The translations under genes and the position numbers were made by a program. The notes below the pieces were generated by a model. It was not told the DNA's origin. It searched no databases and saw nothing but the letters and a program-made list of their open reading frames with translations. A DNA stretch of 63,859 bases, filler included, from Dugesia japonica (lineage: Eukaryota): assembly GCA_001938525.1 (NCBI GenBank). It is 4 parts of 4 records of this genome, joined end to end, with 100 filler letters (N's around TTAATTAATTAA, not from the genome) between each part and the next. Parts side by side here need not be neighbours in the genome. Positions count along the whole stretch, not along the records: positions 1 to 17,314 come from MQRL01529426.1; 3 more parts are not named here. The stretch is one strand, 5' to 3'. This document shows, one piece after another, positions 11,905 to 14,900 of the stretch (the stretch's first letter is position 1; every line of letters begins with the position of its first letter).

Positions 11905-14900
11905 GGAACAAGGAGAAGGTTTATGATTTATTAAATCCAATCTTAAATGCCAGTTTGTGCATTTTTCACATTCATATTGATTTCCGTGAGGCCAAGTTCT
12001 AATTCCATTATCTTCAATGATTCTTTTATCATTAAATGCAAATAATGCAATCTTTTCTTGTTTTACTATTTCAATTTCATGACAATCAGATTTTAAAGAA
12101 TAATTTATTCCTTTAATCATTTTCTTTGAATCTTTTAATACTGAATCAAAATCATGCATTAATAATTGATTATTTTTCTTAACACCTTTATTTCTAGAAT
12201 CAAATTTTTGTTCATTTTTCTCTATATAACTATAAGCATAAGATTTTGCTTTTATAAAATCACCTTGTAAAATATCACAATTAGGTTTTTCATCTTTCAT
12301 TTGGAAAAGATTATCTCCTAATAATGTTTGTAAATTTACAAGATTATCTCTACCTTTAATTTCAACAAAGATACAGTCAGTGTTTTTAATTATCAGGGGA
12401 AATCCACAGTTAAATGTTCCATCTTCAGTTTCAATGTCATAAACATCTTCAAGTCCTTCTCTTAAATATTCTACGGTTTTAACATTAGTTTTTAAATTTG
12501 ATTTCATTTGTGTTGCAATATAATGTGAATATTTATTATTAGTAATAGCTAAATTAATTCCTAATGATGTTCCTAAATAATATAATTGTGAAAATCTTTT
12601 TTTAACATTTTCTTTAAAACTAATTGTTTTTGATTTTTTAATTCCATTAATTAAATAGTAACATACGAAAAACCAATATCTTTCATTAAATGATGCATTA
12701 AAAATATAATCTGGAATATCTTCTGAGATTGGTTCTTGTGTTTTGTTAAATTCGAGTTTATAAGAATTAGATGATGAAACTATATCTTTAAATTCGGTGT
12801 TATAAACTTCTTCATAATATCTTTTTATTTTTCTTAATAAATGTAAATCATTAATATAAAATGCTTTTGGATATTTTCTAGATATTCCTGCTAAAAAAGC
12901 TTTCTTAGTTAAATCATCCATAGGTTCGTGTTTACTTAAAATTCTTTCAAGAGTTATTTCTTTATCTACTTTAAACAATTTTTTATGTAATAATTTAATT
13001 TTAGGTGTTAAATCTGTTGGTTTAACTTTTATAGATTCCTCGTCTAATAATGAATGATCTTCTGTTACATCAACAATCCCCATTTGTGTTCTAACTCTAT
13101 AAATCTTTTTAATTGTCTTGTGTTTAATTACTTTTTTCAAAGGAACCCACTTAGTTTTTGCCCAAATTTCATAATTTTCTGGATAAGAATAATATTTTTC
13201 CTTGTTTTTAATATAATTTTGATCTATCTCTGAAATCTTTTTAATTATTACTTTATTATCTTTTCTTAGCAATATTGGAGTGTCTTTTGTAACACTATCA
13301 GTATAATGAATTTTATAGTTATCTTGTCCAATTAAAGGTTGCATTTTTTCATATATAAAATCATACATTACATATTTTGCATGTTCAAGAATTGTGAATC
13401 CAATATATGGAAATTTATTATATTTTAATGTAGCTTTCCGCATTAGCATTGCAGCAATTACTGCTTCATTTGTATTTCCATTTTTTTTAATATCTTCTAA
13501 ACTTAGTCTATTTTTTCTTTTGTATCTTTTTTTATCTTTTGTATCTTTTGTATCTTTTTCATCTTTTTCATCTTTTTCATCTTTTGTATTTGGACAGAAA
13601 ATTTTAGAAGATAGAAATGTTGGTTTAGAAGCAAACTTTTGATAATCTCTATCACTGCTAACTATTTCAATATTGCATCTGTTTCTAATATTTTCTAGAG
13701 TTTTTCCAAAGAAAGCATTTAACATTAATTTATAAGAGTAATCCCCAAATTCATCTTTATTTTCCTTTGCTTCTTTTCTTAATGCAACTAATTTATGAAC
13801 ATGTTTTTTAAACCATAGAAATGTTGACATTTTAATTTTCCTGTGAATTTTTACTATTTTCATTCCTAATTTTTTATAGAGCTCTAAAGTTGATCCTAGA
13901 ACAACATAATTTTTCTTATCAAATTGATTTAATGTTAGTTTAATATTATCTTTTGATATTTTCTTTTTAAAATTCTTTTGATAATTTAATAATGGGAAAT
14001 ATTTTGTTTTATCATGTATTTCTGGCGGATATTCGAGATCAACTTCATAAATATAATTCATATTAGCAGTTGAGGTTTGATAAATTAAATCATTGCACTC
14101 GATCATTTCACCGGTTGGAAGTGGATTTGTCATGCATGATGCGTAAAGTGAATTTTCATCAATATATTTAATAAAAGTATCTTCCATTATATCATCAACA
14201 TTAATTTTTTGACCTGAATTCATCATTTTTAAAATATCATCAGCTTGTGCTTGATTTAATCTTCTTCCACTTGGTTCTTTAATATTATCATGTGCAAAAA
14301 CTTGACGTTCACCTAGGACACCAGAATATCCACCTCTAATACCTTCTTCAATTAATAAGAATTTATCATAACTATCTTCTTTAGCAAATAAAAGTTCAAC
14401 TTTTGCGTTTAACATTCCTGTGTCCCATGAATAACCTGGTGCAGAATATGAATAACAAGGATCTAATCTTAATATTTTATTTAAACATGAAACTCTAAAA
14501 TTTTCCAAGAAATCAGTTAGAATTAAAACATCAAGTTTCATATAGTGAAGCATGTAATCCCACATGTTATTATAATTTCTTTTGAAGTCTTCTAAGAATG
14601 TTTTATAATCTTGATCAGATATTGATTTTTGAGTTAAAGTGTTAAAGAAATCATCTTTTGTTGGTATTTGATCTGATTTTAATAATTCTTCAACTTCAGT
14701 TATGGTGTCACCTTTTACATATTCATATGGAAATAATGCTTTTTTAGGTTTTAGGTTGAATGAATTTAGAATTGGATATTTTTTTGATAATGCTAACAAA
14801 TCACCCATTTTTTCAACAGATGTATTTGTAAGTAATCTTGCTGAATCTAAGAATTTAATATTTTCAAATTCAAATGAAATATAATTGTCTGTATTATGTG

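Follow-up and report, generated by a model that had tools for sequence, protein, structure and literature searches.

A class 1 intein of the pol-c allele family in the protein-primed DNA polymerase of a Polinton element from a Dugesia japonica assembly

Introduction

Inteins are rare in eukaryotic nuclear DNA, and in the literature covered here eukaryotic DNA-polymerase inteins have been reported only in giant-virus-type polymerases. This work concerns an intein in the protein-primed DNA polymerase (pPolB, of family B) of a Polinton/Maverick-type element from Dugesia japonica (GenBank assembly GCA_001938525.1). The window is a stretch of 63,859 nucleotides joined from four parts; the DNA analysed is positions 1-17314 (MQRL01529426.1), and window numbering is used throughout. 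The insert in this polymerase is a class 1 intein, with a Hint splicing domain and a nested LAGLIDADG-type domain, on the basis of its sequence family, conserved residues and fold. We consider it probable that it is a pol-c-type intein which came from the family B DNA polymerase (PolB) of a giant virus, sits in motif C of the Polinton pPolB, still splices and has a decayed homing endonuclease.

The closest described systems are the pol-c inteins of giant viruses. The Mimivirus PolB intein lies at YGD/TDS and was assigned to the pol-c allele (Ogata et al. 2005, PMC549080; the slash marks the insertion point here and below), and the inteins of HaV01 and of many Imitervirales-like metagenomic PolBs, such as that of ChoanoV1 (P0012), use the same D/T point of motif C. 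These inteins share with the one in the window Ser1, the T-x-x-H motif, the block F Asp, the terminal Asn, Thr+1 and a nested LAGLIDADG-type domain. The start SVT.DTP and the end GFPLI[IV]KN are nearly identical, and the full-length identity is 28-37%. The window intein differs in its host, which is a Polinton pPolB (PF03175) and not an RNA/DNA-primed PolB (PF00136/PF03104), in its shorter length (305 amino acids (aa), against ~360 aa typically and 351 aa in Mimivirus) and in its degenerate endonuclease motifs. Archaeal pol-c inteins, including NEQ068 of Nanoarchaeum equitans (PDB 5oxw), occupy the same motif C position (position III, PMC549080). NEQ068 was the best PDB sequence match to the window intein, with a marginal E value of 0.003-0.02; unlike the window intein it is split, has no endonuclease and belongs to an archaeal host.

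Virus-derived PolB inteins were described on nuclear scaffolds of Klebsormidium, Tetrabaena and Hondaea (Gallot-Lavallee et al. 2023, PMC10710043). That study stated that DNA-polymerase inteins had previously been unreported in eukaryotes; its own cases are virus-like polymerases, and it mentions neither Polintons nor protein-primed polymerases. Green et al. (2018) do not mention Polintons either. These inteins resemble the one in the window in that an endogenised viral polymerase gene houses them in nuclear DNA, whereas their hosts are giant-virus-like classical PolBs.

Selfish insertions of another kind are known from Polinton polymerases. The Polinton pPolB2 carries HNH and VSR nuclease domain inserts (Jeong et al. 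2023, PMC10748475), and these nuclease inserts were taken to suggest possible intein invasions (Krupovic et al. 2024, PMC11161782). They are similar to the present case in being nuclease-type selfish insertions in Polinton pPolBs, and the window polymerase has an HNH/endonuclease VII-like insert of a similar sort. Unlike the window intein, they have no Hint lobes, occupy different positions and are believed to be retained in the mature protein; the window intein is complete, bounded by Hint lobes and located in motif C.

No paper describing a Hint-type intein in a Polinton polymerase came up in the literature search, whose coverage did not extend to the 2006 paper of Kapitonov and Jurka or to a 2015 Polinton review. 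What appears to be new here is the presence of the pol-c intein allele in the protein-primed class of polymerases, the intein family itself being already known. To call the locus a candidate for an undescribed system, as the initial annotation did, was therefore an overstatement. The Kapitonov and Jurka paper may mention an intein in a protist Polinton polymerase, and priority for an intein in a Polinton polymerase is for this reason not settled.

Results and discussion

An in-frame insert between the two halves of motif C

The pPolB gene and its parts are as follows.

11899..16479, minus strand: pPolB open reading frame (ORF); Pfam PF03175, 62 bits against a cutoff of 25.8
13297..16479, minus strand: N-extein, aa 1-1061, with the N-terminal region, an HNH-like insert, Exo I-III, motifs A and B and the first half of motif C (HYTD)
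12382..13296, minus strand: intein, 305 aa, Ser1 to Asn305, identified from profile, homologues, conserved residues and fold
12982..13296, minus strand: N-terminal splicing (Hint) lobe of the intein, ~aa 1-105, with Ser1 and T78-x-x-H81, from TIGR01445, the beta strands of the model and column shares
12487..12981, minus strand: LAGLIDADG-type endonuclease domain of the intein, ~aa 106-270, from the helix/strand pattern, Foldseek and motif comparison
12382..12486, minus strand: C-terminal splicing lobe of the intein, ~aa 271-305, with block F Asp287 and the Lys-Asn end, near-identical to the corresponding stretch of P0001 (see below)
11902..12381, minus strand: C-extein, 160 aa, with Thr+1, the second half of motif C (TDC) and the KxY motif
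15025..15153, minus strand: HNH/endonuclease VII-like insert in the N-extein, aa 443-485; Pfam PF02945, E 7e-4, below cutoff

The ORF has 1526 codons and starts with GTG, the first ATG being 12 codons further in, and its minus-strand translation contains no stops or frameshifts. The insert comprises residues 1062-1366 (305 codons, in frame) and reads SVTKDTPILL...GFPLIIKN, preceded by ...KIHYTD and followed by TDCIFV..., so that the insertion point falls between the D and the T of polymerase motif C (HYTD/S...KN/TDC). The 305-aa insert and its junctions had been reported in the initial annotation, and the translation reproduced them exactly. At the composition of the window (~24% G+C), the probability that a frame of 305 codons stays open by chance is ~4e-13, and a chance open frame was rejected as an explanation of the insert; for the entire ORF the probability is ~7e-63.

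The base composition of the intein is nearly the same as that of the exteins, with a GC of 0.232 versus 0.239 and a GC3 of 0.118 versus 0.127. This agreement argues against the intein having come recently from a donor with a different base composition, and such an origin was rejected as a candidate explanation.

The insert is a class 1 intein

The NCBIfam model intein_Nterm (TIGR01445) matched aa 2-84 of the insert with 34 bits against a cutoff of 24.5. No C-terminal NCBIfam model matched the insert, and PHROGs gave no match for the intein or for the unassigned ORFs of the element. A word-indexed search confined to the insert returned 904 related proteins, and an exhaustive HMMER search of 1.84 billion proteins returned 1376 relatives at E<=0.001, 585 of them at E<=1e-10.

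When 29 relatives were aligned with the window intein, twenty columns were invariant in the 30 sequences and the window copy keeps all of them; they include S1, P7, H59, K63, G73, V77, E79, D80, H81, S82, L83, L84, Y286, D287, T290, F295, G298 and N305. The residues of the splicing reaction are all present, namely Ser1, T78-E-D-H81 of block B, D287 of block F, N305 and Thr+1, and they are conserved in the family (S1 and H81 in 29/29 relatives, T78 in 28/29). The earlier reading of these residues as intact is thus upheld.

An AlphaFold2 model of the intein, built on the 29-relative alignment, had a pLDDT of 91.9 and a pTM of 0.90, with beta-rich N- and C-terminal lobes that enclose a helical middle domain. 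Foldseek comparison of the model with the PDB gave inteins with a homing endonuclease, first the TliVMA and PhoVMA inteins at E 6e-14 and then PI-TkoII, PI-PfuI and PI-SceI, followed by mini-inteins and the free LAGLIDADG enzyme I-DmoI. The Foldseek probability was 1.00 for the solved inteins 7qsu (E 6e-14), 2cw7, 1dq3 and 1vde and for mini-inteins. The match to the Hint fold, on which the intein assignment had been staked, was therefore obtained with solved intein structures. Among the predicted viral structures of BFVD, the best-ranking matches were DNA polymerases of a phycodnavirus, Megavirus, Pandoravirus, Pithovirus, Marseillevirus and HaV01. A non-intein domain insertion of the HNH/VSR type was also considered as the identity of the insert and was rejected by the fold and the terminal residues.

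Relatives of the intein lie at the pol-c site of giant-virus polymerases

Junctions were mapped in 135 relatives of the window intein, 125 of which are located at YGD/TDS in classical family B polymerases of giant-virus type. The typical relatives start with SVT.DTP and end with GFPLIVKN, and among their hosts, which match Pfam PF00136/PF03104, are Mimiviridae sp. ChoanoV1 and proteins from viral metagenomes, encoded on contigs as long as 430 kb. The junction in the window, YTD/TDC, corresponds to the same motif C position as YGD/TDS, and the best full-length matches of the window intein are all at the D/T site of motif C. By sequence, the insert is accordingly placed in the pol-c allele family that is abundant in Nucleocytoviricota family B DNA polymerases. 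Both the pol-c insertion site and the affinity to giant-virus PolBs had been proposed beforehand, and both agree with these counts. The host in the window is a protein-primed PolB (PF03175) without a match to PF00136/PF03104, whereas the described pol-c members reside in RNA/DNA-primed PolBs.

Searches for further loci gave few results. The window intein used alone as the query found nothing in IMG/VR, and the yield of a two-sequence alignment was a single weak giant-virus locus in IMG/VR and none in metagenomes. Searching with a degenerate DNA pattern based on the conserved block at the C-terminus retrieved five loci, including two views of one giant-virus contig; all five were classical YGD/TDS PolBs, and no new pPolB host was among them.

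Some distant relatives (P0148, P0152, P0180, P0227, P0236 and P0110) have D/TDG or D/CDG junctions in proteins other than PolB, P0110 carrying topoisomerase II/gyrase B domains. These junctions indicate that the intein family colonises look-alike, non-allelic sites.

Intein-free relatives and the state of the exteins

The exteins were compared as separate N- and C-terminal pieces with 35 intein-free relatives. They keep every residue that is invariant in these relatives, in Exo I-III, motifs A, B and C and KxY. Identity to the closest pPolB relatives of the window exteins is only 38%, and in 35 of 42 pPolB relatives the site is occupied by an uninterrupted [YF]xDTD[SC], i.e., the empty form of the insertion site.

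Two further observations were made on the N-extein. The HNH/endonuclease VII-like insert in the N-terminal half has Cys- and His-rich motifs, and the PF02945 family is also recorded in several pPolB relatives (P0257, P0263-P0267 and others); together with the intein, it gives this polymerase two different nuclease-type inserts. Between motifs B and C, at 13509-13589 on the minus strand, 9-nt tandem units encode a low-complexity stretch rich in Lys, Asp, Glu and Thr, which is an in-frame microsatellite expansion within pPolB.

A second pPolB intein and the proposed direction of transfer

The best match of the insert was P0001, a pPolB of 1603 aa on a 5332-bp ENA metagenome contig (L001, ERZ25654850) with a G+C content of 0.234. 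P0001 contains an intein of 350 aa at YLD/...KN/TDS and is the sole other pPolB-hosted intein found. The two inteins are 41% identical (E 1e-75), whereas BLASTP gave no significant similarity between the two N-exteins (E 0.88) or between the two C-exteins (E 0.25). P0001 therefore resembles the window copy in its host class, equivalent site and G+C content and differs from it in its exteins, in its longer intein and in a pass with the Pfam model PF14528. The P0001 exteins are 72-81% identical to intein-free proteins, among them P0299 and proteins of Mytilus edulis and M. galloprovincialis, which run uninterrupted through the motif C site; the site is likewise empty in the relatives at 78-80% identity, Mytilus proteins among them. 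The intein was absent from all 119 listed relatives of P0001 and from all 161 listed pPolB relatives of the window and P0001 polymerases together. The G+C content of contig L001 is like that of the window, yet the exteins are near annotated Mytilus proteins, and the contig may come from a bivalve or from a free virus.

In a neighbor-joining (NJ) tree the window and P0001 inteins were sisters in 98/100 bootstraps. With midpoint rooting, this pair lies 3 nodes deep within a clade of 65 inteins, all of which end in Lys-Asn; besides the pair, the members that were checked are inteins of classical PolBs. Since the same intein lineage is found in two very different classes of pPolB, both of which have relatives with empty sites, horizontal spread is suggested. 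The nesting of the pair, together with the host counts, favors a giant-virus PolB as the source, and it fits a transfer from a large DNA virus into pPolB, in line with the exchange between a large DNA virus lineage and a Polinton that had been proposed earlier. The intein lineage probably passed from a giant-virus PolB into pPolB genes, through homing or through recombination at motif C, whose short sequence is conserved, with a cell where both kinds of element replicated as the likely setting, and it would afterwards have moved between very different pPolBs.

The direction of transfer is the less secure part of this reading, because it depends on an NJ tree rooted at the midpoint and on host counts that reflect database sampling. 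The opposite history, in which the intein was ancestral in pPolBs and passed to giant-virus PolBs, or in which both acquired it independently from older archaeal or phage pol-c inteins, would gain from the same two points, given that sampling heavily favors giant-virus metagenomes. Polintons, virophages and giant viruses also share hosts, archaea have pol-c inteins as well (PMC549080), and the best, if marginal, PDB sequence match is the archaeal split fragment NEQ068. It is nevertheless hard to reconcile with the finding of 2 pPolB hosts versus at least 125 classical PolB hosts, with the lack of an intein in any of the 161 listed pPolB relatives and with the position of the pair inside the Lys-Asn clade. 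Moreover, vertical co-descent in such divergent hosts predicts equally divergent inteins, which is not what was seen. We regard the opposite history as very unlikely and retain a giant-virus PolB as the probable donor.

If the transfer took place in this way, the motif C site would be an intein target across the deepest split of family B polymerases, and inteins would move between giant viruses and Polinton-like elements as well as among Polintons. Such movement would be independent evidence that the two kinds of element replicated together in one cell.

State of the homing endonuclease

The intein in the window is 305 aa long, compared with ~360 aa in typical relatives. Both of its LAGLIDADG motifs are impaired, one by a deletion and the other by a substitution; motif comparison showed that both are kept in P0001 and in most relatives. 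Consistent with this, the P0001 intein passes the Pfam model LAGLIDADG_3 (PF14528) and the window intein does not. The LAGLIDADG alpha/beta fold is still predicted, with a Foldseek match to I-DmoI (TM normalized to the target ~0.53, E ~1e-4), and the endonuclease domains of PI-SceI, PI-PfuI and PI-TkoII also match the domain. From these comparisons we conclude that the endonuclease of the window copy is degenerate and that this copy can presumably no longer home. The initial annotation had not remarked on this decay, which probably followed fixation of the intein. The window and P0001 inteins would then represent two stages of the intein life cycle, one with a decayed and the other with an intact endonuclease.

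Splicing and the polymerase active site

In the proposed mechanism, pPolB would be made as a precursor of ~1526 aa with a split active site. Splicing would begin with an N-O acyl shift at Ser1 and continue with transesterification to Thr+1; Asn305 would then cyclise, and an O-N shift would complete the reaction. Excision would restore motif C as Y-T-D-T-D-C and leave a polymerase of ~1221 aa. Judging from the geometry of the site, the polymerase is expected to depend on splicing, and replication of the element may hinge on this post-translational step. A homing-dead intein could persist at such a site because its removal, unless exact, would ruin the polymerase's catalytic centre.

Splicing is predicted from the conserved residues of the intein, and several observations weigh against this reading. 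The N-terminal model TIGR01445 matched the window copy above its cutoff, whereas Pfam Intein_splicing (PF14890) and the remaining Hint models of Pfam, as well as all of its LAGLIDADG models, missed it. The penultimate residue of the intein is Lys304 and not the textbook His. The residue at position +3 of motif C is Cys, where 34/35 intein-free relatives have Ser. The terminal inverted repeats (TIRs) of the element are 89% identical with gaps, which may point to an old element that selection no longer maintains. Finally, three runs of N hide some of its sequence, and two ORFs outside the core set cross them.

The point about Lys304 loses its force in the family, since 106/136 members end in Lys-Asn; it is a trait of the subfamily and no defect of this copy. 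The initial annotation was correct in reporting Lys at this position, and its treatment of the residue as a departure from the norm did not hold. The other points, apart from the N runs, could be accommodated if the intein were real by descent and no longer spliced, leaving pPolB permanently split in a decaying fossil Polinton. The degenerate endonuclease, the diverged TIRs, the miss by the Pfam splicing model and the Cys in motif C would all be in keeping with such a relic. A relic would not be expected, however, to retain every splicing residue that is invariant in the family, a frame of 1526 codons open at ~24% G+C, all of the invariant catalytic residues of the exteins and open frames in the other core genes. 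Moreover, inteins late in their life cycle have usually lost the endonuclease and retained splicing. We therefore consider a dead relic unlikely and prefer an intein that still splices.

The host element

Judged from its sequence, the element that carries the gene is a Polinton/Maverick with apparently intact core genes. Its features outside pPolB are listed below.

848..16921: Polinton/Maverick-type element, ~16.07 kb, from inverted repeats and gene content
848..986, plus strand: left TIR, from inverted repeat I1/I2 and BLASTN
16775..16921, minus strand: right TIR, from inverted repeat I1/I2 and BLASTN
1825..3123, plus strand: double jelly-roll major capsid protein gene; Pfam PF21738, 54 bits against a cutoff of 27
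3139..4500, plus strand: rve integrase gene with an N-terminal PLA2-like domain; PF00665 43 bits and PF08398 33 bits, both above cutoff
4827..5639, plus strand: A32-like genome-packaging ATPase gene; Pfam PF04665, 44.7 bits against a cutoff of 22.8
8673..9179, minus strand: candidate adenain-like maturation protease gene; Pfam PF00770, weak, E 0.035, below cutoff

The core genes (capsid, integrase, ATPase, protease candidate and pPolB) show no stops or frameshifts. No minor capsid protein was identified in Pfam and PHROGs scans of the element ORFs, and tRNA and Rfam scans gave no match. The two ends are identical at 132/149 positions in a BLASTN comparison, which corresponds to TIRs of ~140 bp. 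Since (TA)n adjoins both ends, the termini are placed with an uncertainty of a few bases, and a 6-bp target site duplication would be masked by this repeat. Beyond the TIRs there are non-repeated flanks of 847 and 393 bases, with microsatellites of (TTA)n, (TA)n and (CA)n, the right flank containing (TA)n(CA)n. From the TIRs and the repeat-rich flanks, the element looks integrated in eukaryotic DNA.

The left flank appears by eye to be higher in G+C. Its far-left end holds a 46-codon piece that weakly resembles an integrase core (PF00665, E 0.11) and ends in a stop, and this piece is followed by an N run and (TTA)n.

A Polinton-like virus in free form, a contaminant or a chimera of the assembly might instead be the source of the contig. 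The low identity of the closest pPolB relatives (38%), the N runs and the lack of any entry for the window proteins in the gene-position index leave some room for this, which we nonetheless think improbable: the TIRs end inside the piece with flank on both sides, these flanks carry microsatellites and, on the left, the weak retroelement-integrase fragment, and the element itself encodes an rve integrase. An element integrated in the genome thus remains our preferred interpretation.

A broader and more doubtful proposal is that a distinct giant-virus-derived intein lineage circulates horizontally among the pPolBs of Polintons in animal genomes. It is suggested by the fact that one of the two host types is closest to mussel Polintons, and that the window element has PLA2 and HNH domains as in animal-associated Polintons. 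We hold it to be possible, with the balance of our judgement on the negative side. If it were true, these would be the first inteins resident in metazoan nuclear DNA, and they would be a molecular trace of past replication of giant viruses and Polintons within the same cells of an animal lineage.

Minor features of the element

The parvovirus-type PLA2-like domain is located at 3319-3537 on the plus strand, at aa 61-133 of the integrase ORF (PF08398, 33 bits against a cutoff of 23.9), and both the Y-x-G-x-G loop and the H-D-x-x-Y motif are visible. In Polintons and adintoviruses a PLA2-like gene is known as a separate gene, PLA2X (PMC8502044), and the fusion of this domain to the integrase may be unusual.

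The ORF at 1175-1831 contains about five near-perfect 30-nt tandem repeats at 1570-1780 (plus strand), which encode a repeated unit of 10 residues, and its N-terminus has weak DNA-binding and helix-turn-helix-like matches. On the minus strand, the region 6467-8647, with one N run inside, contains the repeat families D2, D5, D6 and D9 at spacings of ~500 and ~980 nt. These repeats indicate that a single module, duplicated in tandem and since diverged, makes up the ORFs 6467-7327 and 7328-8647; it matched no known family. Two pairs of inverted repeats with 85% and 90% complementarity connect 8651-8778 with 9708-9922 and thereby link the end of the protease-like ORF with the opposite-strand ORF 9321-9848; each pair holds reiterated CATAAAGG-like units.

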